Below are positions 1,491 to 37,919 of a stretch of DNA of 64,000 bases, in pieces. The notes under the pieces were generated by a model. The model saw only the letters and a list, made by a program, of their open reading frames with translations. It was not told where the DNA came from and made no database searches. How positions within the stretch are numbered: position 1 is the first letter of the stretch; each line of letters begins with the position of its first letter. Position numbers and translations under genes: made by a program. The stretch comes from Botryllus schlosseri (Eukaryota): positions 4,030,001 to 4,094,000 of the forward strand of contig CM119384.1 in NCBI GenBank assembly GCA_051294905.1, read 5' to 3'.

Positions 1491-1534
1491 CTCCAATTCC
1501 AATATAAATACGTGTTCTCTATTTTCTCAACCAG

Positions 1535-4500
1535 ATGAGAAAAGTGGTCAGCTGCACCCGACCAAACCCGACGTGGTCCTCGAAGCCGACAAGCTCAACA
1601 CCGATGCTACGAAATCACCAGTACGAAAACCGTCCATCCGCAAAAAGAACATATCGAAAACTTCCGGCAAACAAGTCACCTTTGCCGAGCCAGGCGGTTC
1701 CGGGCCAGACGCATCTAGCAAAGGCCCGAGTTCAGATGGCGACGGTGATAATCAGTACGACAGCAACGTATTTTCCTCTAGCGCAACGTTCGAGAGTTAT
1801 CATAACCGTCTCGCAGCCGATCAACCTCAAAGTGACCGTGGCCTTATGTACACAACCAAGGGCTCCACGGCTACAAAGGGTCTTGTCATCAGAAGAAAGG
1901 GTAGTTCCAGGCGAAAGATAACAGCCAAAGAAGATGCAAATAAAGAAGTCACTGATCAAGACGAAGAACCTGTGAAATCAGATGATGAAGTATCCAAGGT
2001 TGACACAACTCAAGACAGTAAAGGACAAATAGAAACGAGTATAACACCAGTGTCAGTTGATGTTGAAGAGAATCAACATGAAGGTAACGCGCTTACATCA
2101 GGCGCCAGTCTTAAATTACCGCATACTGCGGAGAAACCTGACAAGGAAGAAGATGACGACGAGGAGAACGAAGACAAAACGAAGAGGAAGTTTTGGAAGT
2201 TAAAAAGAAAAGGCAGCTCCAGACGAAAGGATGCAGCTAAATCATCAGGTGATTCAAACAGAAGTATTGCTGCAGCCGCCACGCATCAAGAAACAGACAA
2301 CGTTGATTCAGAAGTATCCGTCACTGATACAATCAAAGTAGAAATTGGATCGGCTGTCACCCTTGTTCATATCGAAGAGAAACAAAGTGAGAGTAGCTCG
2401 CTGTCAGTAACCGCTGGTACCGACCCGTCAGTAGCTGAGGATAAAACCGAAGTGGACCAAGATGAAGGTTCGCATACAGAGAAAACAAAGAAGAAGTTTT
2501 GGAAGATCAAAAGGAAAGGCGGATCCAAGAATAAGGCCTCCGAGAAAGGACAGGTTGATTCTGCCCAAGATACCAGATACAGTAAACTATCAACCACTGA
2601 CTCGGGTCTGACCGTAAGCCTTAATGTCACAGAAGAAACTGAACAGACTGTACGCACTGAAACACAAATTGAAGTTGAAAAGAGCATAGATAATGTGGTT
2701 GTGTCAAGTGAAACCACCGAGACCCATGAATTGTTGGCGGGTCTAAACGTTCCACAAGATGATAAGTCATTTACGGAACCGGATGATAAGGCAGATCTCG
2801 ATAAATCGGGGAAAAAGGTTCGCGTGATTAAGAGAAAAGGCAGTTCCAGGAGGAAAATGATGAGCAAGCTAACGGACGATTCTGATCGCGACAGTCTATT
2901 TCGTGCTCCTGAATTCGAAACCGCTCACCAAGTCCATGCAGAAAGCACTGAGTGTGCAACAGAAGAAGAACCTTGTAAAATTGAGTTTGAAGCTACTGAA
3001 TCACATCCGGCGAATTCCGATAATACTTCGACGCATATTGATCACTCAGTAAATACTAAAGAGGCAAGCACTGACGTGATAACTCATGCGTTTGCAGAAG
3101 TTATAACAGAGGTTGGGGAATCTAACACTGAGGAAAAATCTTCCTCACTTCACGACAGTAACTCCCCCAGAAAGGTAGAGGAGCATGAACATCCAGACAA
3201 ACCCGAAGATTCCAAGACATCGCCAACAAATACGCATGGGGAATCTTCTCTGGCAGTGTCAGTTAACTACGAGGAAGCAACATTGAAGCCAAACGCATTT
3301 TTGACATCAGCTCCTAGACACGACGGGCTTGAGTTGGATTGCGAAGACGGTGGGCGGACACCTACAGTTGATAAATCTGGAACTATGGACGGTATGGAAC
3401 TGCTGAAAGAAATAGAAGCGGCTTTACCCGGAGTTACTAAAGAATCGGAAGATCAAGATCATGGCAGCTGTGACGAGGGAACAACCAAAAAGAAAACTGT
3501 CAAAAAAATCAAGGTACAAAAGCACAAGAAACGCAGCTCCGTGGAAGAGGAACAGGCGAGATCTCTGATAGACGAAGTCGCGAGATCGATGGCGGATTCG
3601 CCCGAGAAAACTGGAAAGAAAAAGGTGAAAAAGGTAATCAAGAAAAAATCGGAAGGTCCGGACGACAGTCCTGGATGTATGGATGAGGATCGGGAAGACG
3701 GGGAATGTGGAGAATCCCCGGAAAGGGGCCGCAGAAAAGTGGTGAAAAAGGTCGTCAAAAAGATAAAGGAAGATTTTGACGACGATGACATGGATCGCGA
3801 AGATGGAAAATGCGAAGACTCTCCGGAAAAGGGACGGAAGAAAGTGCTAAAAAAGGTCGTCAAAAAGATAAAGGTAGATTTTGAGGATGGTGAAGAGGAT
3901 CGCGAAAGTGGAAACTGCGAAAAATCGCCCGAAAAGGGGCGGAAGAAAGTGGTGAAAAAGGTCGTTAAAAAGATTAAGGTTGATTTGGCAGATGGTAACG
4001 AGTCACCCGAGCATCACGAAGATTGCGACCCCGAAGACGAAAAATTCAGAAGGTCAAGAAGAGAGGGAAGGGATCGTAGTCCTGGATGTAGTGACGGGGA
4101 GGGGGAAGACGGAACGTCCCAGGAAAAAGGGCGCAGAAAAGTCGTTAAAAAGGTCGTTAAAAAGATAAAGGTAGATGTTGGGGATGGTCACGATTCACCC
4201 GGGCATCATGAAGATTGCGACCCCGAAGGCGATAAATTCAAAAGGTCAAGAAGAGAGGGAAGGGACCACAGTCCCGGATGTGAAGAAGAGGATGAAGAAT
4301 GCGGAAAATCCCCGGAAAAAGGCCGCAGAAAAGTCGTGAAGAAGGTTGTGAAAAAGATAAAGGTAGATGGTGAGGATGGTCACGATTCACCCGGCCATCA
4401 CGAAGATTGTGATCCAGAAGACGAGAAATTCAGAAGGCCAGGAAGAGAAGGAAGGGATCAAAGTCCAGGAGGATGCAGAGACGGAGAGGAAGAAGACGGA

Positions 4501-4833
4501 AAATCCCCAGAAAAATTCCGGAAGAAAGTGGTGAAAAAGGTAGTCAGAAAGAAAAAGACAGATGGCGAGGAGGATTGTCACGAGTCACCCGATCATGATG
4601 AAAACTGCGATCCCGAAGACGAAAAATGCGGAGAATCGCCCGAAAAGGGCCGGAAGAAAGTGGTGAAAAAGGCCGTTAAAAAGATAAAGGCAGACGATGA
4701 GGACGATTGTCACGACTCGCCCGAGCACGACGAAAATTGCGAACCTGAAAGTCGCGAAGGGTTTCGGGCGTCCAGAAGAAAAACGGTCCGCAAAAAAGGG
4801 GCGAGGCGGCCACCTCCCCCGCCGGAGCATTAG
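1535..4833 (+). CDS. Terminal coding exon (~1099 codons, phase-1 acceptor) of an upstream gene; acidic low-complexity protein with polybasic repeats; family unknown
   Basis: Open frame from polypyrimidine acceptor ttctcaaccag|AT (AG 1533-34) to TAG 4831-33. The track's GTG start at 1573 is internal. AT-rich 3'UTR-like sequence with AATAAA follows. Confidence 0.85.
3595..4730 (+). repeat. Coding tandem repeat: SPEKGR(R/K)KVVKKVVKKIK modules with acidic His/Cys spacers
   Basis: Seven near-canonical copies plus one variant are readable in the translation. Confidence 0.9.
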
Positions 4834-15042: not shown

Positions 15043-15152
15043 ATGAGTTTGAAGATCGATGTTTCGTTCCTTACTCCCGAGGAGGACGCTGTCATATTGG
15101 CCGTCTTGCGGAGAGATGAAGCAATAAGAAAAGTTGAAGAAACGAGAGTCAA
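15043..15152 (+). CDS. Coding exon 1 of Slp/Slac2-family Rab effector: SHD1 helix (MSLKIDVSFLTPEEDAVILAVLRRDEAIRKVEETRV)
   Basis: Matches the DLSFLTEEE..ILxVLxRD..L+..EE.R+ pattern of synaptotagmin-like/exophilin N-termini; ccATG context; donor gtaagc, phase 2. Confidence 0.88.
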
Positions 15153-16904: not shown

Positions 16905-17071
16905 ACGACTGCGAAGAAAGTCTGAGGGTGGCAATGAAAAACAAATGCTCCGAACAAGAATATTTACCGGGGAGTGGATCGAACAACTAACTGCTCCAGG
17001 CCGAAGAGTTGTAAAGAGTATAAGTGAAGCACTTCATAAGGTCATCACAGTAAAGACCACCACTGTGACAA
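16905..17071 (+). CDS. Coding exon 2: SHD2 (..RLRRKSEGGNEKQMLRTRIFTGEWIEQL..), no zinc finger
   Basis: Acceptor ctctcacag completes the phase-2 codon AA|A; TGEW matches the SHD2 (S/T)GxW motif; donor gtaaga, phase 1. Confidence 0.85.
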
Positions 17072-17479
17072 GTAAGACAACCACTAGGTTATATTCGCTG
17101 TGACGTAGGCCTATGACCATGATCTTGCTGATTTCCAAATGTATAGGAAATTTTAGTATATCCACAGAACATGCCATAGCAGCTTATTGTTTCGAAATTC
17201 TAGAAATGGATTATTAGGTATACCATGATCTCAAACGCAACTTCTAAACATTGATGACATCACATTATTTAGAATTTATAAATGAGATTTGTTTCTGCGC
17301 CAGGGTCCTGTAGAACTGGTTACACAACATTATTATACTCTAAAGGAGGTTGAATGTGAAGAGTAGCCTACTCAGTATTCATCAATCGATATTTTTGGAT
17401 TGTATGATTAAAGCTGTATTTCCTTATGATTATAACATGATAAGTTATCGATACAAAACTGGAGCATGACTGGTGTGAA

Positions 17480-18390
17480 TGTTATTGGGATGAGTCGAAG
17501 CACGACTTGACTTTGCTTTAGTCAAGAAAATGATTTGTCTTGGATTCGGCTTCGAAGAATGAGAAAATTAAAATACCTCGTGACCCGGAGTTAAATTTTT
17601 GAGTCAATATTCAAGTCATGAAATGTTTTTCTTCGCAAAAGCATTCAGAACGTCTGAGCCGCACTGAGAAGTACCACGCCATTAATACTAAACTGTAATG
17701 TGCTCCATCCCAGTTCCATGTTTACGTTTTCGATCTTGTTAATCTAACAGCGGTATGACAGACAAAATAGCTTCGGGATGCCCTCAACTGCTGGCATATT
17801 GGCCCCAATTGGGATTATAATATCCTTACAGCTAAGTAGGCATATCGTCTGTGTGAATCTAGCTGAGAATGCTAGCAGTTTAATATCTGCGTATCGCGCA
17901 CACGGCTGAATACATCTTGGGTTATGTTCGAAGTTGCAAATACGAGCACCGGCACTGTTAGATAGTTTTGGAAAAATGATCGATTCTGTGCTATTTCAGA
18001 AGTTGGTCAGTGAATTTGAGTCCCCACAGAAAGCCTGCATGGATTTCGAGGATAGGGATGCAGGCGCATAAACCCCAAAGGCATAAATATAGTTGAATCA
18101 TTGGCGATTAAAAAGTACTAAGAATAAAATTTGTTCTATTCTTGACCATTTCGACTAAATTTGATGTGACACTGTGTAGCCTATATGCATATGCGCATCT
18201 GCATCCGCAAAATTAACTCATATAATCTAAACTGAAAATATTTGGTGACTTTAATGTGACGTGGAATCAGAAAATCTGAGATGACTTGACTCCGACCAGT
18301 TTGATGATTTGATTTGCTTAACTTTTAACTCGGGTCAAAATTTGTAATGACTCGGAATGACTTGTGATTCCAAAGCAGTGACTTGATCAT
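17480..18390. repeat. Degenerate gactc/gagtc-rich MITE-like repeat
   Basis: Clusters of gacttgact and gagtc motifs at both ends, as in the 61177 family. Confidence 0.35.
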
Positions 18391-18645
18391 AATAGGCCTA
18401 AACTAATGGATGTCTGCGGTATATCAGAGCCCTTGTCGACATATGTTCATTTTCAATTTCAATGGTTGCAACTATAGTTACAATGACGTAGCTGAGTAGA
18501 GCTAAGAATACTTCAATGAAATTATGAAGTTTGAAGTTGTGTCTTCTCAAATGGACCACTGGATTGCTGTTGTTTTTCTTCCAACGCCATGAAAATCGCT
18601 GACGATAACTGACTCATATACCAACTATACTTGTGAATATTTCAG

Positions 18646-18696
18646 CCACTGAATTAATCGTTAATGATGGCAGAGGAGCCAGGGGCTTCGAGCGAG
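18646..18696 (+). CDS. Phase 1-1 micro-exon (51 nt; TTELIVNDGRGARGFER)
   Basis: tatttcag acceptor, gtgagt donor, open frame. Confidence 0.7.
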
Positions 18697-19104
18697 GTGA
18701 GTGGGAAACTAACTACAGCAGACAAACTTCTCCTTAGTGTGATGCTAACATGTATATTATTTTTCAATACCTCCCGATATCTTTCACCATCCAAAGTGGT
18801 AATTTGATTGGTGCTAATGAATGCGTAACACAATCAGATCTTCTTTGTCATTGAGGATTGCCATAGTGGATTAGTAATCCGTATTATATGTTCACCACCT
18901 TCTACTTTTCAGCACAAAATATCCTGATGAATTCAATAATGGTGCAACAGTTATATTTTTATTACACGACATCCAAACTTACTCTTAAAACGCTTAAACA
19001 AAAGTGACATTCGTTTAATGTCTAAAGACAAACCGGTACTTTATTTCCATAAGTTCACGCCTTTGACTTTGAGAACTGTTGAAGTAAAGGAATAGTCGGA
19101 CGTT

Positions 19105-19390
19105 ATTTATTTTTGTCCATGGCGTTCTTGCGGCAAATACTCCGACTCATAATATACATACACACGATCTGTGTATATGCATCAGGGATTTGCATACCAC
19201 GAGTGCATGATGTACATATGCAGCTGGAGATGGGTGTAGAGACAGCCTTGCAAAGCTCTCTAAGATCAACCCTCCATGGTGTCCCGGAAATGCAGAGAGC
19301 AAAGCGGGGAAGCCACGGATACCAGTTTTAATGACCAAGTCTTTAGTTTGACCCGACCGCGGAATGAACCCACAACTCACCGATCAATGG
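19105..19390 (-). mobile_element. tRNA-derived SINE remnant
   Basis: B-box-like gggttcattcc, then a core shared with 52860-53110; A-rich tail. Confidence 0.55.
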
Positions 19391-19626
19391 AAGTGATCCC
19401 CAAACATTAAGATTCGATTAAATGAGGATGATCTACTAAGTAGATTCTACTTGAATACTCGAAGTACTAGCACAAACCTCTTCTGAATGCTACAATAAAG
19501 ATTAAACCCTCAATGGATAGTGGCAAATTTACCATCTCAAGGGTAAATGTTGATACTAATGGAAGCGTAACAGACAGTAGCCAAAATTGAAATCCCATGT
19601 GCTGATGCTGAATTTTTATGCACCAG

Positions 19627-19677
19627 AGCTCGAAACGGAATCTCGTGGTTTGGATTTTCGGCATCATTATCACACCG
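19627..19677 (+). CDS. Phase 1-1 micro-exon (51 nt; ELETESRGLDFRHHYHT)
   Basis: gcaccag acceptor, gtaagt donor, open frame. Confidence 0.7.
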
Positions 19678-19743
19678 GTAAGTTGGTAGTAATGCGCTGT
19701 GATTTTACCGTAAATATTTCTGAAAAATATTGTCTCTATATAG

Positions 19744-19803
19744 AAACTACTTCGCACACAGTGACTGGGGAAGATGATCATATAACGCATAATGTTACCG
19801 ATA
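19744..19803 (+). CDS. Phase 1-1 micro-exon (60 nt; ETTSHTVTGEDDHITHNVTD)
   Basis: tctctatatag acceptor, gtaagt donor, 66-nt upstream intron. Confidence 0.7.
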
Positions 19804-20381
19804 GTAAGTAAGTAGGGACGTAATCAGATGTGGTTCGTAAGAAATATTCGAATATTTGAGTGGATCATCTACGTTTGTCCCACTTTTGCCTTCTTGGTAT
19901 CGAACTATTAACATTATCCACCCTGTACCCGACAAAGTTCATGCAATTTTAAAAATTATCCGGCATGCATTGTATTAACTGGTATTTTCAAGCTTGGAAT
20001 AATTTTAGAACCTTATATTCTGGATCTGCTCCTTATAGAGCACCAGTATTTTTACCTTCAGTTGAGTAACATTTGTAGTGATAATTGTACTTCTAATTGT
20101 TTAGTATTATCAACTAGTTTGACAATGAATCGGTAAATAATATTTGCTTAAATGACGTAGGCCTAATATGTGCAGGCTTGTGTGATATACAACGTACGAA
20201 GTGTGTCGGATGCACTCTCAAAAGTAACTGCATCAATACAATAATCGAATAAATCATAAGTGAAATAAATAAATATGTTTTTGCATGGTAATATGAGTAA
20301 CTCAAATGGAAGCTGTGGTAGATTAGAGAGGACCTTTGCGAGATGTGACACAAATATACTCTCAAGATCTCCTAATCCTAG

Positions 20382-20456
20382 ATAGCTCCATGGTAGTTTC
20401 TGATGAAGGAGGTGAATCACGGGCTCCTAGAAGCCACAGATCTACAGGCAATGGGG
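20382..20456 (+). CDS. Phase 1-1 micro-exon (75 nt; xSSMVVSDEGGESRAPRSHRSTGNG)
   Basis: atcctag acceptor, gtaagt donor, open frame. Confidence 0.7.
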
Positions 20457-20603
20457 GTAAGTACATTATACATTTTGATGACGTGTTAGTATCATGTCAG
20501 CAACAAACTCTTATGCTTGAATTCATAACATATATACTAATTTCAAAATTGATGGACAACAACTAATGTAGTATTAGTGACAACACAATTCCTCTTGGTA
20601 CAG

Positions 20604-20636
20604 AAGACATTGAAGCTCGAGGGGTTTTGATAGATG
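20604..20636 (+). CDS. Phase 1-1 micro-exon (33 nt; EDIEARGVLID)
   Basis: ttcctcttggtacag acceptor, gtaagt donor. Confidence 0.65.
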
Positions 20637-20842
20637 GTAAGTTTGCCAGTATTTTGTTTGCAAAACTGTGCTTGGGCGCCGATTGATATTTGTGGCATAA
20701 TTTAAATATTAATGAATGGAGTTCAATTTTGCGATTGCATTAATTTGTAGTGCGGTGTCTATGACGAGTTAACGGTGTGTGTAATTAATTATGTTCAATT
20801 AAATTTCACGATTAAATGCATTTAAACTACCTTTTGTCTTAG

Positions 20843-20893
20843 CGGAAATGGCGATACACGACGATATAGTATTTGATGCAAACACTATAACAG
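20843..20893 (+). CDS. Phase 1-1 micro-exon (51 nt; AEMAIHDDIVFDANTIT)
   Basis: cttttgtcttag acceptor, gtaatg donor, open frame. Confidence 0.62.
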
Positions 20894-21759
20894 GTAATGG
20901 CGAATTATTCATTGCCTAAGTAATATGGGTGAGCACAACGAATCCGAGTCTAAGATAAATTGGATGTATTAGATTCGTATCGCATTATCAAAATATTTAT
21001 CGCAAGGCAACGCACATTTATGAAACGATATTTCAGCGGTTGACCCGCTGCATCGTCGCAAAGCGCGATGCAGTGATCACGGTCAAGAAGTACAAAATTA
21101 TTTTTATGACGCGTATACGGCACCTTGTGGTCGCCAATACTTTCCAAATGATTCTTGCTGCTATAACGTCATAGTGATTGCTGCTCGGAATACTCGACTC
21201 TACTCAGAAACCAATCAATGAAGAACTCGATTTTCCCAATCCATACTTATTAAAGCATAACCCAGTTATCATAAATTGTAAGTTGAGTCAGTGCTGAAGT
21301 GTCTCACTAATGTTTGTAGGCCTCCACCGGTACTCCATTCCCAAATCCCGTAAGAGTCCAAATTGCGACTCTGACTTCAACACCATGTAATTTCATATAG
21401 CGACTCTCTAAACTATAAATTGAACGACTCAGCAGACTTCCGGCTCATCAGTTTTCAAGGTGGAGATGTGGTTCTTAACCTTTAATGACCTGGGGAACAC
21501 TTACTCTAATCTACAAGCCTTTGGGAACTCCAAATTTTTGCTGAGTCATGAATACAAAAATTGACCACAATACACATCTGACACATTATGATGCACAAAA
21601 TGAACTGTGCATTAACAGAGTGTGAAAGAACAAGACCATTAGAATATGATTTTCACATAAAACGAAAACATTATGAATATTTATTGCATATCAGTACTAC
21701 TCATATTGTTCTCTTTCTGATAATAGTTCCTGATATCTAGAAAAATGCTGTGTTGCTCA

Positions 21760-22255
21760 ACTTGACTCGAGTCATTTTCTCAAAATATGGACATGACTCG
21801 ACTAGACTTGAGTCAATCTGTGTATTGACTCGACTTGTACTCCAGTCATTGCGCATATGACTCGAGACTAGGACGGCCAAGACCGACGTTTCATTGTAAT
21901 TTCGAAGAATAGTAAATTGGTATTTCGTCTATTTTAGTACTGGTATTTGAAAATGCGACCAGAAACTGTTAAAAGTGAGAAAAATCTGTATACTATCAAT
22001 GCGAAACATTCCATATCACCAAGCAGCGCTGTTAAAAATGGGTTTCATAAGACTTCAACTCGAAACTGAACAGTCAACACAATGACTTGGACTCGAGTCA
22101 TAACGCTACGACTAGGACTCGACCCTCTGCTCGACGACTTGCACTTGACTTGACTCGGTGGTGAATTGAAAATATCTCGACTTGACTCGAGTCAAAACTA
22201 TAAAATTGAGATTGACTTATGACTCGGAACCTTTGTGGACTTGGATACAACCCTG
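21760..22255. mobile_element. gactcgagtc-rich hAT-like MITE
   Basis: Ends gacttggatacaaccctg; collinear with 61177-61639. Confidence 0.7.
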
Positions 22256-22523
22256 TTAAGAATAACGTCGTTAGGTTATCGAGTCAGCACCACCATTTTA
22301 TCCTCTCCACGCAATCCCACTGCATGTGCTAACCTTCTAGCAGGGAATCCGTTAGTACCAGTATCACTAGCAAGTCTCTAATCTGGGCTGACCAGGGTTC
22401 AAACGTACGGCTGAGAAGCTGACATTCTAAGTCTATATGCCACTACGCTATATCTTCGGCTGTCACTTCCTTGAATAAACCCAATGTCAGTATCTAGTTT
22501 TAAACCTATGTTTATATGTGCAG

Positions 22524-22571
22524 AGGAGTTGGATATAGTTGAAACTGAAACCGTTAGTAGAATGCCAAAAG
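22524..22571 (+). CDS. Phase 1-1 micro-exon (48 nt; EELDIVETETVSRMPK)
   Basis: atgtgcag acceptor, gtaaga donor, open frame. Confidence 0.68.
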
Positions 22572-22875
22572 GTAAGAACACTCTTAAAGTAATAGAGATA
22601 TATTCTATCGGTTTGAAATCGTCTAAGATCTTTCTCAATATACACGTGACCTTGTGGCCTTTTCTAGCTAAGTAACAGAGTTGAGTGCCGAGTAAACTTA
22701 TGATGCGTCTGTAAAGGTAGGCATTATAACCTATTTCCAAAGTGTATCTTACATCCGATAATGAAATTAATAAATTCAAGCATGAGAGTTTGTTGCTATC
22801 AGTGATTGGCGTATATGCATAACATGAAATTTCCAATTTGCTTTATTGCGCATTAAAAATTGAATTTGATTACAG

Positions 22876-22917
22876 CTACATTTAGTGCTGGTATGCATAA
22901 TCACAGGAGTGGTGATG
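22876..22917 (+). CDS. Phase 1-1 micro-exon (42 nt; ATFSAGMHNHRSGD)
   Basis: tttgattacag acceptor, gtaagt donor, open frame. Confidence 0.62.
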
Positions 22918-23155
22918 GTAAGTCTAATTCAAGTTATCTTGATTATTTAAATCCGTCACCGGCACTCATCTAGAAAAAATGTTATACAAAGTATGATGTA
23001 TATGACTTTGGTCATTGTGAATAGTGCAAATATTTTTTTGATTTTGGACTGCGCGTCAATAATTCTGGCCAATTCAAATAATATTACTGTATCGACCGTT
23101 CTTTTGAATGAATGCGCCGTTCGTTTCATGTCTAAAGACATACTTATTTGTATAG

Positions 23156-23200
23156 ATCATATCCATGCCAATGTTGAATCTCATGGTCGAAAATCAGTGG
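23156..23200 (+). CDS. Phase 1-1 micro-exon (45 nt; DHIHANVESHGRKSV)
   Basis: ttatttgtatag acceptor, gtaaga donor, open frame. Confidence 0.68.
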
Positions 23201-23910
23201 GTAAGACAATCTGGATATGCTCTCGAGGCACTCAATGGGTGGAATAGGTTTTAGGGTAGTGCACATTATGGTGCCCACGCACGCAAGAGTGTGGATATGC
23301 ATGCCATACGTTTTAAGAAGAATTTATATTATACAAGTATTTGAATGTGCAATTGTGCATTGATGATTTGATTTAGTAAATGCAACTTACAGTTATAACT
23401 AAATGGCTAAGCTCGACAAAACCATAGGTATATTTGTAATGTGTTAATGTGTATTGAGTAGGCCTATACTTATGCGTGTGGATCAGGTAAGCACGGTTAG
23501 ATTGCGTTAATTTTTAGTAAGCATCGATCCAAAAACAGTGAAGGATGTGGCATTTTCAAACTTGTTATTAAAAGTTCGCATAATCCTGGGACCAACAACA
23601 TGAAATATCGAGATTCATTCTAAATATGTATAACCCGATCACGATGGGCTCAACTGATTTCCGATTATACTTTTGGAATCATTTTTTTGACTGCATATTT
23701 TATACCATAGGCTTTGTAAGTAGCTACAGAACTTCAATATAGCAACAAACAAATTGTATTGCATACCAGTGTCTACCTTTTTATCTATTCCTAATCTAAA
23801 TAAATGTTGCCTACGACTGCTTGTTTGCGTTTAGTAGCCTGCTGTTTTTTATTTCACGCATCGTCCTTTTCATTTCTCATTACCAAGACGTTAAACTTGT
23901 TCTGACACAG

Positions 23911-26900
23911 GATCAGAGCTAATACATCAGTCAACGGTGACATCGGATTCACCCGCAGAAGCGCTTCAGACTACATCATCGAACTCTTTGCAAAATGAAC
24001 TTCACGACAGGGTCTTGCTAGAAAGCAGTCTCGAAGACGACCTTGCTGATGTTGGAAGTGATGAAGTTTCAGGTCCGGATCATAGCATGAAAAAGATGGA
24101 TATAATAGATTGGATGAAAACAGATTTGGCGTTGGCAATGGAAAGTGCAGTGACTGCGAAAAAACGACGGAAAAGACAAGCTATCAAGGAAGAAGTTATC
24201 ATCCCTGCAAAGGCGCATGATCAACACGAGCAACCTGCCGCACAGATAGCAGATGCGGAACAAGCAAAGAATACACTAGCAAGCCATATGGCAGATGATT
24301 TACAAGCTAATTCAGAGCAAGAATCGCCAAAATATACCGGTCATAACGCGGATATCGAATCAGACGTAGTGCCGGTTAAAGCACAAAAAATCCAAGTAGG
24401 CTTAAATGTAAATGAACTTTTCCTGGAGAAAGCAGCAGACAAGGCTTCTATATATGAAGATAAACCAAGTGAAAATGTCTCAATGGCAGAAGAGACTGGT
24501 CCGGACGCAAATTCTACTGAAAATCTGACAGTTAACACTGTAACCTGTAGCTCATCTTCAGACCAACTCATAGCAGAATGTTCAGAGTCGCAAGATCACG
24601 ACGAAGATATCGCAAAGCAGTCTCCAGAAGCTGTGGCTGGAGAGGAACCTGATATAATCGATCATGTAACTGAAGCATCTGAAATTTCGCATCAGGGCAC
24701 ACATGATGAAAATTTGTGTGCCGACAATGCTGCATCCGCAGAACACCTCTCTTTGCCGGATAAGGAGAGCAGCAGACTATCCAGCGCATCCGACGATAGC
24801 TCGATTGGTGAGGATCAAATGTCTCTGATGCAATTTCTCGAGTCTTTGCCTTCCGCCAAGGCTTTGCGTTCACCTCGTGGGCATCCTAGTCCAAGATTGA
24901 GCAGGCAGATCTCCATCGATTCAATTACAAGCAACGACGCCGTCGTGAATTTACTCGAAGATATGGTCACGAAAGTTGAGGATAACGCTTCCATATCGGC
25001 TGCTGTCGATTCAGCTGTCAGAAAAATAGACGAAACAAATGAGGAGTTTGAGAATTATCCAGCATCGAACATGATATTACCTGAAACTGAAATTTCAGAA
25101 AGCAACGTTGAGCCATCAGCCGCACAGGATGCCTCCAACAGCGTACTTGAAAAAGACAATAAGTCATCAATTGAGGTAAAGGAAATGGAAGAAACAATGA
25201 CATCAATACACGTAAGCGATGTGATGAACCAAATGGAAGGAAATTATGAAACTGAATCTGACAAACAGGATGTTAAAATCGTAGTTGACCATGATTTGCG
25301 TGAAGTATCCGAAAACAAAGATTTACATCAAAAGTGTGGGGACATTAGTAGCTCTGCTGCTGCCGATTCTGGCGTTACTGTTCTTCCATCACCAACAAAC
25401 ACAGATGTGGATAATACAACAACGTCCGACACTGCTAACAGAGATGCAGCTGGCGACAATGTTTCCTTACATTCATTCGAAACTGATGCATTCGCTACAA
25501 CTCAAATTGAATTGGATTCATCGGGAGACGCGGCAACAGCGGAAGAGGGTGTTTTATTCGCAGAGACTGGACGTGTAGAAAATGTGATTGATTATGACGC
25601 AACTGTGGACTATTCTCCTAAACAAACTGTCGATGAAATCGCAGTCGCTTCGGAATTATATCCCGATTCGGATTCGAATGACGGCGCGCCTTTTGAACTC
25701 GAAGATATCGCTAGTTCTATTGATAGCTATGGAAGCTCAAATCCGTCTGCGTATGCCGACTCGTATTTGAGATATGACGAGCTTCTGAACGTGAGCAATG
25801 CCGGCATTTTGCAAGACCCAGAACACATACCCACGATATTGATCACCGATTATGACGAAGATCTCTCGGAAATGACATTGACGAGATATGTGCGACAAAG
25901 CGAAAGCTGGAGTTCTGATTTGTACATTAGCGACGAGGATGAGGTGGAATATAACAGAGAAAGCTCCTGGTCTCGAGATGATACTGAAGATACTGTTAAA
26001 GACGAGGAAACTGTCGATTCGCTACCAGATTCATTACGGCAGTCATCCAGGAATAGCGATTTCATCGATGCCTCAGATTTTCACAGCGTGCCCGACAGTG
26101 AGAATGATTCATCGCACATACCATACGATATTCAAGCAGAATCGTTCACAAAGAACGAGGAAAATATCGATTACACCGAAACACCGCAAAGTGCAGATCA
26201 ATGTACGCGTTCACAGGATTCGCACGTTGAAGATACAACTCCTGTATCTGAAGAATATGATGCAGACGTTGAACAACTGGAGGCAGATATTGAACAAAGT
26301 GTTGATTCACCCGAAGAGCCAAGTGTGATTGATGATGCAGACGCAAGCGAACCAGTTTTTATGCTTGGAAACAATCATTACGTCTCCTACAATGTGGACG
26401 AGGATGATGAAATCGTGATGTATCCTCAGGACTCTTCAAACGTGCCTGATTCACCCATGAATTTTGTACGGAATCTGTATCCAATTGAGGAAGAACATGA
26501 ACCAGACGAGAACCAAACGAGTTTTAAGGAAAACGAGAATCCAGTAGCAGACAACTCGCAAAGTGAGCCATATTATGAAGAGTCAGTCACCGCATATACT
26601 CCTGGCGATAGCCAACGTGGTAAGGAAGGTATGTCAGTAGATGACCAAACACTCAAAGAGAGGTCAATCGATGATATATCACAGAGTAACGTTACTGACA
26701 ATAATGTGATTGAGTCAGTCGTAACATCAGATGCTGTGGGTGGTGGAGATAATAACATGGAAACAGTAAAGTCAGTTGATGGTGAAATGCATAAAATCTC
26801 TACAATTCACGATGTGGAAGTCAAAACTCCACAAGTGGATATTGAGCAAGCGGATGAACAGTCCCTTACCGAACAAACGTCTTTGACTTCACTAAGCGAC

Positions 26901-29900
26901 GAAATACCGCCAGACGATGTGAAAACACAAGCTGATGAAGGAACCACGTTACCTGTTACTGAAGCAGTAGATCCCGTTTCTGTTTGTGACACGACGAAAA
27001 CAAAATTCAGTGTAACCGATGAATTGGAGGATGAAGTCAATATAGGACATTCACAGGCTGATTCACCGTTAGAATCTGTTAAGGAAATCCACGCCGCTAC
27101 TCATGGACAAGAGTTGGAACTTCTAACAGGAGATGAGCTATCACCGACTCAAGAAAACAATTTGAATGAACCAATTCAACAAGAGTCGATAGATCACGAA
27201 GAACATCATAGTGATCCAGACTTTAAAGAAAATGATTCGGACCGTAACACGAAATCTTTGGGTGAATTGATGTTAACGAATACAGAGATTTTCACCGGTG
27301 ATGTAGCTATTCATGCTGAAAAGGGGGTGGTGATTCAAACCCCTGCAGACGAATCAGATGTTGAAACACAAGGAGCAGAACGAACTCATGATATTGAAAT
27401 TGATGGATCGATTTCAAAACATACTTCTGACAATTCCGCAATTGTGACTGTATTACAAACGATAGAACACACTGAAAGCTCAAGTTCCAGAGTAACAGAC
27501 ACGTTGGATTCAGCTGTGCCTCATTCTCTAAATGAAGCAGATAAAGATCCAGAGAAGCTAGAAGAGCAGGTCAATTTCTCGGGATCAACCATTTGGTATG
27601 TGGACGCAATGCATGGTATGAATGAAAACGCAGAAGCACAAAGCTCAGACTTTGTTCTGCCAGATGTCTCAAAGGAGACAATACCTCCAGGCCATGACAT
27701 CGAACAAACAGAGGAAATCAGCGCATCAGAAATGATTGAAAATCAACTGAGCACCGTTACTGATACAAATGAAACACTAAGTAGCAAATTAGCATCGCCT
27801 GATTCTGAATCAGTTGAGAAAGTGACTTTGTATGACATATATCCTGTGGATGCCGAATCAACAATAGATTCTCAAACTGCCAATATTCATGAAGTTGACT
27901 CTCAGAGCAAGAATGTTGATCCAGGGCAGAACGTCGAAGATTCTATTGCATATTCCAGTATGCCAGGTATTGTTCCTCTTGTCTTGTCAACAAACACCCA
28001 GTTTGAGAGTAATCAGCAAACACAAGATACCTTCGCGGACACTGTGCAAAATTCGGAATATCATGAGGATTGTTTTAGAGATGACGAAGTTCAGAAAACA
28101 GTAGCTCCTCAATTTGATCCAGATGGGATTGAGGAAGCAAGCATCGAAATTGGTGGAGCTTCATATAAACAGCCACTGTCATCAACTGACTTTGCCACCA
28201 AGTCACTGATTGAAGAGTTCTCTGAACAGGCGGTGGCGCACGTTGAGTCCAATGTATGTGAAATGTCTGACACATCCACACTTTCAACTGAAGAGACTAT
28301 TACACGGGTTTTGGCTGAAGAGAAAATGCAAGTATCCGAAATGGCTGATACATCAGCACAGTTAGTTGATGAATCCACTGAAAAGTCCTTGACTCAACTT
28401 CAATCGGAAGTCTCTGCTAAGGCTATTACTAATAAGTCCGCCGAACCGGCACGGACTCAAATTGAATCAGAAGTCTCTGAAGTGGCTGATTCCTCCTCAC
28501 CTCTACTTGAAGAATTCACTGAACATGCCTTGACTCAAGATGAATCACATAAATTTGAATTGACTGATGCACACGCGTCGCTAGCGGAAGAGTTCAGTAA
28601 AGAGTCAAAGACTCGAGATGAATCCGAAGTGACTGACATGGCTGATAGATCTATGTCACTGATTGAAGAGTCTGGTGAACAGTCTTCGATTCAAAATGAA
28701 TCACCTAAATCTGAAATTGCGGATAGCTCCAGACCATTGACTGAAGAGTCCACTGAAAAGGTGCAGACTCAACTTGAATCAGAAGTCTCTGAAGTGACTG
28801 ATTCGTCCACCCCACTAACGGAAGAGTCTACTGAAAAGAATTTAACGCAAGAAGAATCACATTTATCTGAAATGGTTGATGCACCCACGCCACCACGAAC
28901 TGAGAAGTTTACTGAACATGATTTGAATCAAGATGAATCACATAGATTCACTCCATTGACTGAAGATTCCACTGAACATGCTTCGACGCAAGTTAAATCA
29001 CATATACCTGAAATATCTGATAAATTTATTTCACGAACTGAAGCGTTCACTGAAGAGGCACGACATCCAGTTGAATCCAAAGTTTCTGAATTAACTGATC
29101 CATCCACACCACCTATTGAAGAGTTGATTGCACAGGTATTGACTCCAGAGGAATCACACGTAGCTGAAATGGATGACACATCCACGCCACAAACTGGGGA
29201 GTCCAGTGAAGAGGTACAGAATCATGATGAATCCAAAGTCTCCGATATGGCTGTTATATTCACGCCATTGATTGAAGATTCCACAGAGCAAGCTTTCGCT
29301 GAAGTTGAACCGGATATATCCGAAATGGGTGATACACTCATACCAAAATCAGAAGAGTGCACGGATGAGACACACACTCAAGTTGAATCCAAAGTCATTG
29401 AGATGACTTTTACGCCCATACCTTCAACTGAAGAATTTCCCGAAGGGGCACAGACTCCAGTCGAATCCAAAGTCCCAGATATGCCCGATACATTCACGCC
29501 ACTAATCGAAGAGTCCGCTGAACACACGCTAAAGCAAGATGAACCAGGGGAATCCGCAATCGATGATGCACCGAGGCTATTAATTGGTCAGTCCGCTGAC
29601 CAGCCTTTGAATCGTGATGAATCAAAGACATTGGATATATCTGATGATGAATCACCAAAGTCATCGATTTCCCCTAGAAGGAAAACAGTGAAAAAGAAAA
29701 AGGCAATGACTGACAAATCTCAGGATATAACAAAGAAGTCGTTGAGAAGGAAAGTTATTAGGAAATCTTTGAAGGATCAAGAAACTACGATCACGGATGA
29801 TCCTGAAACATTAATCAGCACTCATCAAGCATCTCCTGGTACGAATGCTGAACTAAACGAGAACAAAACTCAGGAATATGACACGGAAAAAATGGTGCAA

Positions 29901-32900
29901 GTCGATCTCACGAATGCAACAAAGACTGACACTGCTGTCAAGCTGGCCAAAAGGAAAACCATTAAGAAAAAGAAGGGTAAAGACGAGTCACAAATCAGCC
30001 TATCTAAGAAGAAGATCATAAAGCGCAAGATTCAGAACGAAAGCTCACCTGGAGAACAGGCCTTATTTGCACCTGGATCGACAGAGCAAGCTTCATTTGA
30101 TGGCGAACCAAATGTGCATGCAAGTGATATTTCTGCACCTGAAATCGTTGATACATCAATGCCAGCAAATCAAGAGTCCATTGTGCAAGCTTTGATTCAA
30201 GATGAATTGAAAGTGTCTGAAATGACTTATACATCTGAACCACCAATCGAAGAGCTCAGTGAACACGCACTGCCTCAAGTTGAATCCCAAGTCTCTGAAA
30301 TGATGGCTGTTGTATCCACGTCACTGATTGAAGAGTCTACTGAACAGGTCTTATCATCTCAAGATGAATCGCATATATCTGAAAATGCAGATACATCCAC
30401 GCTACCAATTGAAGAGGCACGGTTTCGAGTAGAATCCGAAGTGACTGATTCATCCACGCTACCAATTGAAGAGGCACGGTTTCGAGTAGAATCCGAAGTG
30501 ACTGATTCATCCACGCCACTGATTGAAGAGTCTGTTAAACAGGCCACAACCCAAGACGAATTGCATATATCTGAAATTGCTGAGTCTGAGTCTACTGAAC
30601 AGGCATTGACTCAAGATCAGTCGCATGTATCTGAAAGGGCTGATATATCCACGCCATCTACTGAAGTGTCTACTGAACAAGCTTCGACTCAAGATGAATC
30701 GCACATATCTGAAATAGCTGATACAATGATTAAAGAATCCATTGAACAAGCCTCGACTCAAGATGAATCGCATGTGTCTGAAAATGCTCGTTCATTCATG
30801 CCGCCACCTTTTGAGTCTAATGAACAGACATCGAATCGTGATGAACTGCATGTATATGATATAGCTGATACATCCGTACCAGTGATTGGAGAGTCCGCCA
30901 AACAGGCATTGACTCAAGATGAATCACATCTATCTGAAATGTTTGATATATCCACGCCACCAACGAAAGAGTCTACTGAACAGAACTTGGCTCAAGATGA
31001 ATTCCATAAGTCCGAAAATGCTGATACAACCACGTCACTGATTAAAGAGTGTATTGAACAGGCCTTGACTCAAGATGAATCGCATATATCTGAAAACGCT
31101 GATAGGACATCCCCGCCCCCTACTAAAGGGTGTACTGAACAAGCTTCGACTGAAGCTGAATCGCGCATATCTGAAATAGCTGATTCATCCACACCACTGG
31201 GTGAAGAGTACGCCAAACGGGCTACGACTCAAGAAGATGAATCGCATATATCTGGAACTGCTGATACATCCACGCAACAAACTGAAGAGGCACAGACTCC
31301 AGTTAAGCCTGAAGTTGCTGATTCATCCACACCACCGATTGAAGCATCCATTGAACAAACCTCGACTCAAGATGAATCGCATGTGTCTGAAAATGCTCAT
31401 TCATTCGTGCCACCAACTGTTGAGTCTACTAAACAGGCATCGAATCATGATGAACTGCATGTATATGATATAGATGATACATCCGTACCAGTGATTGGAG
31501 AGTCCGCCGAACAGGCATTGACTCAAGATGAATCACATCTATCTGAAATGTTCGATATATCCACGCCTCCAGCGGAAGAGTCTACTGAACAGAACTTGGC
31601 TCAAGATGAATTCTATACGTCCGAAAATGCTGATACAACCACGTCACTGATTGATGAGGCTACTGAACAGGCCTTGACTCAAGATGAATCGCATATATCT
31701 GAAAAGGCTGATATATCCACGCCACCACCTACTGAAGGGTCTAGTGAACAAGCTTCGACTGAAACTGAATCGCACATATCTGAAATAGCTGATTCACCCA
31801 CACCACTGGTTGAAGAGTACGCCAAACGGGCCACGACTCAAGATGGATCGCATATATCTGGAACTGCTGATACATCCACGCAACAAACTGAAGAGGCACA
31901 GACTCCAGTTGAGTCTGAAGTTGCTGATTCTTCCACACCACTGAGTGAAGCATCCATTGAACAAACCTCGACTCAAGATGAATCGCATGTATCTGAAAAT
32001 GCTCGTTCATTCATGCCGCCAACTGTTGAGTCTACCGAACAGGCATCGCATTATGATGAACTGCATGTATATGATATAGCTGATACATCCGCACCAGTGA
32101 TTGGTGAGTCCACCGAACAGGCGTTGACTCAAGATGAATCACTTATATCTGAAATGTTTGATATATACACGCCCCCAACGGAAGAGTCTACTGAACAGAA
32201 CTTGGCATACGCGCCACAAACTGAAGAGGCACAGACTCCAGTTGAATCTGAAGTTGCTGATTCATACACACCACTGATTGAAGAATCCATTGAACAAGCC
32301 TCGACTCTAGAGAATTTGCATATATCTGAAAATGCTGATACAATTACTGCACCGACGGAAGAGTCCACTGAGCAGGCCTTGACTCAAGATGAATTGCACA
32401 TATCTGAAAAGACTGATATATCCACCCCACCAACTGAAGAGTCTACTGTACAAGCTTTGGTTCAAGATGAGTCGCAAACATCTGATATAGCTGACACACC
32501 CACACCACTGATTGAAGAATCCATCGGACAGGCCCCGACTCAACATGAATGGTATATATCCGAAAAGGCTGATATATCCACCCCACCAACTGAAGAGTCT
32601 ACTGTACAAGTTTTGGTTCCAGATGAATTGCAAACATCTGAAATAACTGACACATCCACACCACTGATTGAAGAATCCATTGAACAGGCCTCGACTCACG
32701 ATGAATCGTTTATATCTGAAAAGACTGATGTATCCACCCCTTCGACTGGCGTGTCTAATGTACAAGCTTTGCTTCAAGATGAATCGCAAACATCTGAAAT
32801 AACTGATACATTCACACCACTGATTGATCAGTCCACTGAACAGGCCTTGAGCCAAGATGAATCGCATCTATCTGATAATGCTGAAGCATTCATCTCACCA

Positions 32901-35900
32901 ACTGGTGAGTTTACTGAACAGGTCTTGTCTCAAGATGATACATTCACGTCACAAACTGAAGAGGCACAGACTCCAGTTGAATCTGAAGTTGCTGATTCAT
33001 CCACACCGCTAATTGAAAAATCCTCCAAACATGCCTTGACTCCAGATGAATCTTATCTATCTGAGAATGTTGATACTTCGATGTCACCAACTGTTAAGTT
33101 TACGGAAGCGGCCTTGACTCAAGATGAATTGAATACATTTGATAATGCTGATGCAGCCAGCAAAATGGCTCAACATGAATCACTTACATCTGAACAGGCC
33201 GATACAGCCGCACAACAAACTGAAGAGTTCGCTGAAGAGGCGCAGACTCGACTGGAATCCAAAGTCTCTGATATGGATGATACACCTACGCCACATATTG
33301 AGGAGCCCACCAAACATGTGCTAATTCATGATGTACCACTCGAATCTGCAATGGATGATGCATCCAAGCTTATAATTGTCGAGTCCGGTGACAAATCGTT
33401 GAACAAAGATGAGTCAATGACATCAGAGATATCCAAGGCGAGAGAATCGGCTGATGAAGAATCGCCAAAGCCATCATCTCTCCCCAGAAGGATTACAATA
33501 AAAAAGAAAAAGACTACGACTGACAAACCACAGGATGTCACAAAGAAGTCGATCAGAAAGAAAATGATTAAGAAATCAGCAAACGATCAAGAAACTGCAA
33601 TCACAGATGATTCTGAAAACGTAATCAGCATTCATCAAGCATGTCCCGGTATGAATGCTGAACTAAATGAGAACAAAAGTCAGGAATATGAGTCGGAAGG
33701 AACCTTGCAAGTTGATCTCACGAATGCAACGAACACTGACACAGTGGCCAAGTTGGCCAAGAGGAAAACAATTAAGAAAAAGAAAGGTAAAGACGAGTCA
33801 CAATCCAGCACATCTAAGAAGAAGATCATCAAGCGCAAGAAAAATAACGAAAGTGCATCTTCACAGCAGGAATCATTTTCATCTGAATCCACAGAGCAAG
33901 CGTCATTGGATGGTGAGCCATATGTAAATGCAACTGATATATCTGTACCTGAAATGGCCGATGCATCAATGCCAGCAACTGAAGAGTCGATTGCACAACC
34001 TTTGACTGAAGATGAATTGCAAGTGTCTGGAATGACTGTTACATCAGCCCCAACAACTGAAGTGTCTACTGAACAGTCACAGCCTCAAGGTGAATCGAGG
34101 AGTTCTGAAATGCCTGATATATCCACGTCACTGATTGAAGATTCTACTGAACGGGACTTGACTCAAGATGAATCGCATATATCTGAATATGCTGATACAT
34201 CCACGCCACTCATTGTGGAGTCCACCGACAAGACCTTGAGTCAAGATGAGTCAGATATATTAGAAAAGGCTGATACATCCATACCACCAACTGGTGAGGC
34301 TACTGAACAGACTTTGACTCAAGATGAATTGCAGATTTCTGAAATAGCTGATAGATCCACGCCACTGGTTGAAGAGTCCGCCGAGCAGGACTTGACTCGA
34401 GATGAATCGCATATATGTGAATATGCTGATACATCCACGCCACCAACTAAAGAATTCACGGAAGAGATTGTGAACCAAGTTGAATCGCATGTAACTGAAA
34501 TTGAGGATACGAATACGGCAATGATTGGAGGGTCCATTGAACAAGTATTGACTATAGATGAACCACAAGCATCTGAAATGGCTGATACATCAACTCCAAC
34601 AATAGAAGAGTACTCGGAACGGGCTTTTTCCCAAGAGGATTCACAATTATCCGAAATAGCTGGTACGTATATATCTGCAACTGAAGAGTCCACTGAACAG
34701 GCTATGACTCAAGGCGAACCTCAAGCACATGAAATAACTGACACATCAGCTGTAACAACTCAAGAGTACTCGGAACATGCTTTGCCTCAACAGGATTCAC
34801 AATTAACTGAAATAAGCGATACATCCACACCTGCAACTGAAGACTCCGTGGACCAGGCTCTGATTCAAGATGAGATAAAGTCGTTGGAATCATCCAAAAC
34901 AACAGAGTCCACTGATGATACACCACAAAAGCCATCGCCAAGAAGAGTGACAATTAAAAAGAAGAAAACTGCAAGCACTAAACAACAGGATATCGCAAAG
35001 AAGTCGATCAGGCGAAAAGTTATAAAAAAATCGGCAAAAGACCAAAAAATTACAATCACAGAAGATTCCGAAATAGTAAGCAATCAAGAATCTTCATCAA
35101 GCAACGCCGAGTTAAACGAAAACACAATTCAAGGATGTGACTCGGATGGTAGTCAGCAAAGGCCCGAAATAGATGATACAATCGGACCAAGTTCTGACTC
35201 TACGTATAAGATGATCACTGAATGTGAACTGTCTATTCCGCCTGTAGAGGACAATGCATCGAATTGCGAATCGGCTATCGCTGACCCTCATCGTGAATTA
35301 GTAGCTGACGAAGGCCCTGGCGTACTTGATTCTGCGTCTGAATACGCAGGAGACGGACTGTTTACGTCTGATATACCCCAATCTCTGCCATTGTATTCAA
35401 CCGATCATGCCACAATGGCGAATGAAACACCGACATTAATTTTAACGTCTCCGTCAAACACAGAAACCGAAATAAAAGCCGAAGTTTCTATATTTGAAAA
35501 GAAAACCAAGAAGTCCAGAAGGAAGAGTCTGATTCGAAGGAGAATCTCCGGCGCAACAGACGAGACGTCAAGTAACGATGGTGTTCTCGAATCGTCGGAA
35601 GATAATCTATCAGATAAAGAGGGCTTTTCCTATTATTCAGCAGCAGAGGAACTCGAAAATCTATCAGAAAGCGGTGATGTCGCAGACCACAGCGTAGAAT
35701 TCGATACAGAAACACTTGCCGGTGATGCCGTAAAGGATGAAAATGAGTCCAAACCTGATACAATTGGTGGAGCCGCTTTGGAAGAGAAAGACTTGAATAT
35801 ATCAACGCCTGTAGTGGATCAAGCATCGGATGATGACCGATCTCAAACACAGGTGAAAAAAATTACAAAAAAGTCAAAGAAAACTGTCAAATCAGTCAAA

Positions 35901-37919
35901 AGAAAGGTGATCAAAAAGGTACAGCCCAAAGGAGATGACACTATTCAAACTGGAGAGCTGGCGGATGATCCGACAGTTCTAGAATCAAGCGTGACAGATG
36001 ACACTGTATCACATGATATGCCATCTTCACACGCGATCGAGAATACAGAGGTAGCAAGTCAAGAACAGTCCGAATCAGACCGTGCTGGTACGACACACGA
36101 AATCCACACGGATGACAAATGCGATGGAGAGAATAATGAATCAGGGGTTCGGACCGAACTGCCTCAGCGTAAAGTTAGGAGAAAGACCGTAAAGATGCGC
36201 AAACAAACTACGGACGGCTCCACAGACAAGAAGTCAGTCAAAAAGAGGGTGGTCAAAAAGATGCAACTAGTCAGCGATCAGACTACAGTAGAAGCGACCG
36301 ACATTGAAGTCCAACCCGATGCTAACACTCTCTCGAGTGAGCAAGTGATTCAAACTCGAGTGAATATCCAGGTTGATGACAATGAAGTAGGGGATGAAGG
36401 TTTTTCCATTGAAGACAGGGACAAACTATCTACCGAAGTTCAATCACAAATATCTGATGCTGTCACCGATTCTGATGGGTCATCTTCTCAATTTCAGTCA
36501 GTTTCAGAGGACCTGACTGTTGAGCACCAAAGCACAATCAATAGAGAGACAGTCTGCGACGATGAAATGAAACTTGTTACATCAGGCGTTTCTGTTGCAG
36601 CAGATGCAGCTGACACAAGCAGTGTCGTCAGTCCTGTGCCTTTTGACAATGCGTCGAGAAAAATCAAGAAGATCAAAAAGTCTTCCAGGAAAAAGGATGC
36701 TGAGAAAACACCTTCTATAAAAAGAGTTCCCAAACCGACAAACGCAAATGATCCAATCTCTACAGACTCCCACTCTCCCGTAATGAGTCCACACGCTATC
36801 GACGTGATTGAAAAGCCAGATTCAGACATACACGATTCCGTGTCAGAGGCTTCGGCAACTCACTCTGCGAGTGGCATTGATGCGCAATATGTGGAATCCG
36901 GTGTCGTAGCGCAATCCACGCCAGTTCAGTTCAAAACGAATGCTGAAATATGCGATTCAAGTACAGACGAACAGTCGAATCGCAGTATGTCCGTGACGAA
37001 AATATCCTCCAATGAAGTTGATCAAGATTTGGCAGCTAATACTCACGAACTAGAACAGGCGTGCGAGCCCATAGAAAGCATCGATGCTGCTGTAGAAGAG
37101 TTAGGATCTGCAGATAACATCACTTCCGAAACTGGTAATCAACCAGTGGAAGTGGAAGGCACTGCTCCAACCGAAATCTTCCAAGAAACACAGGATCGCG
37201 ATCAATCTTTGACAAACTTATCCTCGCCGACATATGATACTTCACTAGCTCGATCTTTAGAGAATGAAACAATTTATGAGGAATCAGCTGATGGTACACG
37301 GGCTAACAAGCATAACAGTGGCGAAGAATTTAATCCAATTGCAGAATCAAGCACAGGTCACGATTCTAACTCTCAAACTCCTTCAAAACCGGGCTACGCC
37401 GACAGCATCAGCGATCCTGTTACGGCAGATCACGAGATTTCGCCCGACCCGCCAAAAGTCAAGAAATCAATCAGAAAAATCAAGACGAAAAAGTCTAATC
37501 GAGAATCTGCTGCGGGAGGCGAAGTGGACGCTTCGACTCGTCCCAAATCAGCCAGAAGAAAGGTTATAAAAAAGGGCCCGAGAGACTCGCCTAAACTAGA
37601 CACGGAGTCAGCAGAAGTATCAGAATCTTCAAACGTTGAACATATCCCAGACAGCACTCATGTTGTTTTAGAGGGCGAATCACACGTAGAACAATCCGCA
37701 ATGTCACAAATCCCGGTTGACGAATCGGCACAGTTGAAACAAGAAGAGACGGCTACAACAGCGCCGGTGAAAGCGGTGAAAAAGGTCAAAAAATCGACAA
37801 ATAAGGTACCGGCTGACGCCGACAGCAAAGGCGATTCAAGTAAAAAGACGACTGTAAGACGAAAAGTGGTTAAAAAAGCACACAAGCCAGCCGATCCTGA
37901 GGGAGATGATAGGACGTGA
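23911..37919 (+). CDS. Giant ~14-kb coding exon of the Slp/Slac2-like gene; Glu/Ser/Thr/Asp-rich disordered region with repeats and polybasic islands
   Basis: Uninterrupted frame of ~4,669 codons from phase-1 acceptor ttctgacacag|GA. It ends at TGA 37917-19, which overlaps a possible donor ac|gtgaga at 37916. Confidence 0.9.
28250..34900 (+). repeat. Coding tandem array of ~78-nt/26-aa units (consensus ~TPLIEESTEQALTQDESHISEMADTS), roughly 70 units by length
   Basis: Repeated actcaagatgaatc / gagtctactgaacag motifs and repeated peptide in the translation. Confidence 0.9.

Follow-up and report, generated by a model that had tools for sequence, protein, structure and literature searches.

We analysed a 64,000-nucleotide stretch of the genome of Botryllus schlosseri (GenBank assembly GCA_051294905.1, contig CM119384.1, positions 4,030,001 to 4,094,000 of the forward strand; hereafter the window, whose coordinates are used throughout). 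The window has the character of animal genomic DNA, with about 40% G+C and GT..AG introns, and it carries a gene in which two exons encoding a putative Rab-binding head are followed by an array of small exons and then by a single giant exon. An initial annotation made from the letters of the window had placed nine small segments, here m1 to m9, between the head and the giant exon. Five of these segments (m1, m2, m3, m4 and m8) are real exons, joined to one another and to the giant exon in transcripts from two independent studies; the other four (m5, m6, m7 and m9) are, judging from the sequence, probably genuine regulated cassette exons.

A Slp/Slac2-like gene and its array of small segments

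The coding part of exon 1 (Table 1) encodes the peptide MSLKIDVSFLTPEEDAVILAVLRRDEAIRKVEETRV, which includes a candidate SHD1-type Rab-binding helix, VSFLTPEEDAVILAVLRRDEAIRKVEETR. Positions 2–29 of the peptide matched the first helix of the Pfam family FYVE_2, the rabphilin/Slp effector domain, with an E value of 0.003 and 18.1 bits, under the cut-off of 27.2. Among known structures in the PDB, the peptide matched Slp2-a/Rab27A fusion chains (E 0.0035) as well as melanophilin (2zet_C) and Slp2 (3bc1_B), and seven of its eight PDB matches at E≤10 were Slp2-a or melanophilin. Exon 1 thus appears to carry the SHD1 helix of the Slp/Slac2 (exophilin) family of Rab27 effectors, with marginal support from Pfam; the locus did not stand out in a genome-wide scan with the FYVE_2 profile. 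Exon 2 reads ...RIFTGEWIEQL..., which we take to resemble the (S/T)GxW motif of SHD2; searched alone, this exon had no profile match in Pfam and no match in the PDB. The SHD1 helix of exon 1 and the TGEW part of exon 2 have no Cys-rich zinc finger between them, and Rab27 effectors are found both with and without a zinc finger (PMC10511049, Fig. 1 legend). Because no similarity was found outside SHD1, we refer to the gene as Slp/Slac2-like, a putative Rab27 effector, and do not claim that it is an orthologue of EXPH5.

Exon 2 stops at 17071, one base into a codon, and the first two bases of the giant exon, entered at 23911, complete a codon. The open frame from 23895 to 37916 comprises 4674 codons, and the giant exon itself 4,667. 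Its product is acidic, rich in S, E, T and D, and has no Pfam domain. Residues 1–700 and a 466-residue piece, picked so that incomplete open reading frames of transcripts could match, found no relatives in protein libraries, and an exhaustive HMMER search with 1200 residues against 1.84 billion representatives likewise found none, in libraries that are possibly short of animal proteins.

Between the donor of exon 2 and the giant exon (17072 to 23910, plus strand), exactly nine segments are preceded by AG, followed by a strong donor (GTGAGT, GTAAGT, GTAAGA or GTAATG), a multiple of three in length and stop-free in phase 1-1. They are the nine segments of the initial annotation, and the length given there for each matched exactly at its place; the multiples of three, the phase, the absence of stops and the GT donors hold for all nine. 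The phases are compatible along the whole path, from the phase-1 donor at 17071 through nine phase 1-1 segments to the phase-1 acceptor at 23911. Eight segments end in G and m3 ends in A, and all 512 of 512 inclusion combinations are open. That these final bases keep every combination free of stops, as had been proposed, is correct and trivial, because stop codons all begin with T, and a G at -1 belongs to the donor consensus anyway.

As a chance control, the same criteria were applied to both strands of 73 kb of other non-coding sequence in the window, which yielded, for each phase, 0.5–1.0 candidates in 6.8 kb. On its reverse strand the intron itself had one candidate per phase, against nine on the plus strand in phase 1-1. 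With nine segments found where 0.5–1.0 were expected, the array exceeds chance.

Table 1. Features of the gene, spliced joints and a neighbouring repeat, in window coordinates (a slash marks a splice site).
Feature	Positions	Strand	Length	Details
Exon 1, coding part	15043–15152	+		ATG at 15043; phase-2 donor caa/gtaagc; encodes candidate SHD1-type Rab-binding helix
Exon 2	16905–17071	+	167 nt	TGEW motif; phase-1 donor caa/gtaaga
m1	18646–18696	+	51 nt	Phase 1-1; spliced in X1 and X5, aligned block begins exactly at 18646
m2	19627–19677	+	51 nt	Phase 1-1; spliced in X1 and X5
m3	19744–19803	+	60 nt	Phase 1-1; spliced in X1 and X5; last base A
m4	20382–20456	+	75 nt	Phase 1-1; spliced in X1 and X5
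m5	20604–20636	+	33 nt	Phase 1-1 candidate; skipped in observed transcripts
m6	20843–20893	+	51 nt	Phase 1-1 candidate; skipped in observed transcripts
m7	22524–22571	+	48 nt	Phase 1-1 candidate; skipped in observed transcripts
m8	22876–22917	+	42 nt	Phase 1-1; spliced in X1 and X5, straight onto giant exon
m9	23156–23200	+	45 nt	Phase 1-1 candidate; skipped in observed transcripts
Giant exon	23911–37916	+		Phase-1 acceptor acacag/GA; frame open up to 37916
Joint m1>m2	18696>19627			GT..AG; contigs X1 and X5
Joint m2>m3	19677>19744			GT..AG; contigs X1 and X5
Joint m3>m4	19803>20382			GT..AG; contigs X1 and X5
Joint m4>m8	20456>22876			GT..AG; contigs X1 and X5
Joint m8>giant exon	22917>23911			GT..AG; contigs X1 and X5
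Interspersed repeat	21756–22260	not assigned	~500 bp	In the m6–m7 intron, outside the exon array

Transcripts and the four candidate exons

We sought RNA sequencing runs that contain the giant exon and aligned four of them to window positions 18100–24099. The spliced evidence comes from assembled contigs of two independent studies: X1 (study P1), a 1981-nt contig with a depth of 15.6, and X5 (study P2), with depths of 12.2 and 9.8. In both studies the joints listed form one and the same chain, m1>m2>m3>m4>m8>giant exon. The aligned blocks have the lengths predicted for the exons ('side' values of 49–52, 61 and 42), and their boundaries agree to the base. The m2–m3 intron (19678–19743) is only 66 nt long, and the RNA contigs of both studies confirm it. 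All five proven exons are multiples of three, which would happen by chance in about 1 of 81 cases if only their sum were constrained. The X1 contig runs for about 1.2 kb into the giant exon and continues upstream of m1 for another 300 letters or so, room for the 167 nt of exon 2 and some 130 nt of exon 1; from these letters we infer the joint between exon 2 and m1.

A retrocopy as the origin of the spliced contigs was rejected: the 495.5-Mb genome contains a single copy of the exon sequence and of the giant exon's beginning, so the spliced form derives from RNA. As the initial annotation had it, these small exons are part of a gene leading from a Rab-binding N-terminal region to the giant exon; the X1 and X5 contigs join five of them. 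A direct splice from 17071 to 23911, the outcome that it had named as speaking against the array, is not the main form, since X1 and X5 join m1–m4 and m8 to the giant exon.

For the four segments that these transcripts skip, the argument starts from their number. Four candidates are left unexplained where at most about one is expected (Poisson p ~0.006–0.02), and their splice signals equal or better those of the RNA-proven exons. The acceptor of m5 (ttcctcttggtacag) is strong and its donor is ATG/GTAAGT; m6 has the best pyrimidine tract of the set in its acceptor (taccttttgtcttag), with the donor CAG/GTAATG; and m7 combines a gtgcag acceptor with the donor AAG/GTAAGA. The weakest pyrimidine tract of all belongs to m8, a proven exon.

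We also computed a codon score, the log-odds in bits per codon of a model of the giant exon versus a model of the intron. The scores were +0.18 for m5, +0.21 for m6, +0.41 for m7 and +0.02 for m9, against -0.44 +/- 0.34 (maximum 0.13) for background pseudo-exons chosen by the same criteria. In random open windows the 95th and 99th percentiles were 0.04 and 0.25, which places m7 above the 99th percentile and m9 at about the 94th. Five unlisted candidates in the same phase (at 17659, 21224, 21320, 21872 and 23412) scored from -0.41 to -0.69, as the background does, and a sixth (21357–21386), which has a weak GTAATT donor, scored +0.40.

Further evidence comes from a short peptide motif. The initial annotation had several exons sharing a loose E-(S/A)-R-G; the motif occurs literally in m2 (ESRG) and m5 (EARG), and the remaining instances are near-forms, ESRA in m4, ESHG in m9 and GARG in m1. 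The ESHG of m9 and the ESRG of m2 match in frame at 11 of 12 nucleotides. The giant exon, with its 4,667 codons, has none of ESRG, EARG and ESHG, a motif set chosen after the fact. The accompanying suggestion of exon duplication found little to sustain it: when the nine exons and the beginning of the giant exon were aligned pairwise as DNA, 1 of 45 pairs reached p≤0.05, as expected by chance; in-register similarity of the peptides was marginal (p ~0.03 over 6–8 residues, not significant over 10–12); and no tandem repeats were found. Duplication of exons is possible, on weak evidence.

Taken together, we favour with moderate confidence a single-copy gene with a fixed five-exon linker and up to four optional cassettes, and it is fairly likely that at least two of m5, m6, m7 and m9 are used as cassette exons. 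Several points weigh against this. None of the four appears in a spliced read or contig in X1 or X5, and no second isoform was found in the two studies among the joints listed (29 further joints lie outside these). A raw-read RNA run, X24, sampled to about 6%, gave no reads on the gene. The junction between exon 2 and m1 falls outside the aligned stretch. The codon score is taken over 10–16 codons per exon, and the proven exons m1, m2 and m8 score below zero, so it separates the classes loosely. Finally, no protein relatives turned up in any library searched.

These points lend themselves to a simpler account, in which the gene has only five real exons (m1–m4 and m8), all constitutive, the other four are chance or decayed pseudo-exons and there is no alternative splicing. 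The identical chain without the four, seen in two independent studies with no alternative joints listed, is what it predicts, and coverage over the four is zero or unspliced only. A low-depth unspliced piece (20616–20777) is all that overlaps m5, which the 20456>22876 joint bypasses; m6 has zero depth in X1 and X5; m7 is touched by one unspliced piece (22497–22690, depth 2.7, X5); and m9, bypassed by the 22917>23911 joint, is covered by the unspliced pieces 23094–23263 and 23173–23329. Similar scattered pieces of pre-mRNA occur elsewhere in the same introns. An intron this long should contain roughly 0.5–1 false candidate, so chance could readily account for one or more of the four, and m9 scores only +0.02 per codon. 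Against this account stand the excess of four candidates over the one or fewer expected, codon scores that all lie at or above about the 94th percentile while all unlisted candidates but one resemble the background, splice signals that match the proven exons in strength, and the ESRG/EARG/ESHG motif that m5 and m9 share in frame with proven m2 and that the giant exon lacks. Assembled contigs also drop rare variants, so that the absence of an isoform from them is weak evidence. We regard the five-exon account as rather unlikely.

That all nine exons are independently optional, giving up to 2^9 linker lengths that tune the spacing between head and giant region as first proposed, is very improbable: all exons are phase 1-1 with 512 combinations in frame, and the four of nine skipped in the sampled transcripts leave potential for choice, but m1–m4 and m8 stand together in the 1981-nt X1 contig and in the same order in X5, with none skipped and no second pattern listed, and a fixed five-exon core with a few cassettes fits the data better.

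The encoded linker and other features of the locus

The observed five-exon linker (m1–m4 and m8; 279 nt, 93 codons) is hydrophilic, acidic and rich in His, Gly, Ser and Thr, with a net charge of -7 and a mean hydropathy of -1.13. Inclusion of m5, m6, m7 and m9 would add 177 nt, or 59 codons, and the complete nine-exon linker of 152 codons would have a net charge of -17, 13 His, no Cys, Trp or Gln, and a mean hydropathy of -0.83. Judged by its composition, in which it resembles the S/E/T/D-rich giant exon, the linker is presumably a disordered spacer.

With five constant exons and up to four cassettes, the protein would consist of a Rab-binding head (exons 1 and 2), the linker and an acidic, domain-free body encoded by the giant exon (about 4,670 codons). 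Exons m1, m2, m3, m4 and m8 would be included together, as in the sampled transcripts, and m5, m6, m7 and m9 would be restricted to certain tissues, stages or minor isoforms. Each cassette would then lengthen by 11–17 residues the presumably disordered spacer that separates the head from the giant acidic body. Because every exon is in phase 1-1 and a multiple of three, inclusion or skipping would alter the length of the linker only and leave the frame untouched. Any functional effect of linker length, such as tuning of distance, would be purely conjectural.

Two further observations concern the RNA data at the 3' end of the array. Over m9, the unspliced X1 contig departs from the window at three positions, 23146 (A>T), 23149 (T>C) and 23152 (A>G), each of them in the pyrimidine tract immediately ahead of the m9 acceptor; the differences represent an allelic variant, and the change at 23146 adds a pyrimidine. 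In the run X6, a 250-nt contig (23770–24019) passes unspliced through the acceptor at 23911, and there is no depth on m1–m8; possible sources of the contig are pre-mRNA, carried-over DNA and a transcript initiated within the last intron.

The introns also hold repeated sequence. The interspersed repeat between m6 and m7 has at least 40 copies in the genome at 80–85% identity, is rich in palindromic words of the type GACTCGAGTCA and shows very high depth in all RNA-like runs, with many chimeric joints. A stretch of about 55 nt in the m1–m2 intron (19128–19182) has very high depth in every run, including raw RNA reads; the reads have loose ends at either edge and differ from the window in a fixed set of letters. 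The stretch resembles a piece of some abundant repeat, or of a strongly expressed RNA encoded elsewhere. Between positions 14000 and 40000, searches with Rfam and for tRNAs revealed no RNA genes hosted in introns.

Upstream, on the plus strand, an open frame of 1116 codons (1483–4830) has an excess of A over T like that of the giant exon and no Pfam domain. Eight copies of a motif of the type RRKV(V/I)KK lie in this frame, and the giant exon has eight more (those at residues 1922, 3700, 4548 and 4649 among them). A paralogue of the giant exon was considered for this frame and rejected, as BLASTP gave no significant alignment; the frame may be a neighbouring gene with a similar kind of basic linear motif.

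Comparison with known exon arrays

The 5' exons 4–8 of TNNT3, which encodes fast skeletal troponin T, form a combinatorial array of tiny cassette exons whose alternative use is documented (PMC2447309). The present array is like it in being a run of very small in-frame exons, any subset of which keeps the frame, in an acidic and apparently unstructured N-terminal stretch. It differs in that a single pattern is seen and four of the exons are without RNA support, in that the exons are larger (33–75 nt) and in that the gene is Rab-effector-like and not sarcomeric. The combinatorial use proposed at the outset does not emerge from X1 and X5, which show the same single chain with no alternative joint listed. 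There is a slim chance that nine independently regulated cassettes grade the linker from 0 to 152 residues between the head and an acidic body of about 4,700 residues, which would amount to a troponin-T-like array in a membrane-traffic protein.

The closest architecture is that of EXPH5 (Exophilin-5/Slac2-b), a vertebrate Rab27 effector with an N-terminal Rab-binding domain and a long region without recognised domains. Most of the EXPH5 protein comes from one large last exon, and its Rab-binding domain is not known to have a zinc finger. The pathogenic EXPH5 mutations reported in PMC4695416 all lie in exon 6 (for the family, see PMC10511049), and the human gene is reported to have 6 exons, none of which can be skipped in frame (PMC8621297, table). 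In the Botryllus gene, by contrast, the number of symmetric exons in the same position is at least five and may be nine. As a test of EXPH5 orthology, the giant exon found no relatives in the libraries searched, which may lack animal proteins, and no similarity extended beyond SHD1. To Slp2-a and melanophilin the likeness is in the SHD1 helix, where 29 residues of the exon 1 peptide align with the helix that contacts Rab27 (PDB 8p3j, 7opp, 3bc1 and 2zet); the difference is that neither C2 domains nor myosin-binding regions were seen here and that the remaining protein has no detectable relatives.

Arrays of symmetric exons that encode disordered or extended segments, and whose number sets length, are also known from the PEVK region of titin and the variable exons of CD44. 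Those much longer arrays (tens to more than 100 exons in PEVK) clearly arose by duplication and have documented tissue-specific patterns, whereas duplication is statistically undetectable here. Neural microexons, 3–27 nt in length (up to 51 nt in broad definitions), preserve the frame and frequently fall within surface or disordered segments. Exons m7 and m2 resemble them in having UGC near the 3' splice site. The term micro-exon, applied to the whole array in the initial annotation, fits only loosely: none of the nine exons (33–75 nt) is 27 nt or shorter, seven are at most 51 nt, and m3 (60 nt) and m4 (75 nt) are plain small exons.

Small symmetric exons in disordered linkers are thus well known, and nothing here would surprise a specialist. 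For the annotation of Botryllus, the 5' gene model is now fixed as 15043–15152, 16905–17071, the five proven small exons and the acceptor at 23911, and four further exons are flagged, which automated annotation would be likely to overlook or to handle unevenly. Should the silent four turn out to be tissue-specific, the gene would be a handy case for the tuning of linker length in a vesicle-tethering protein.

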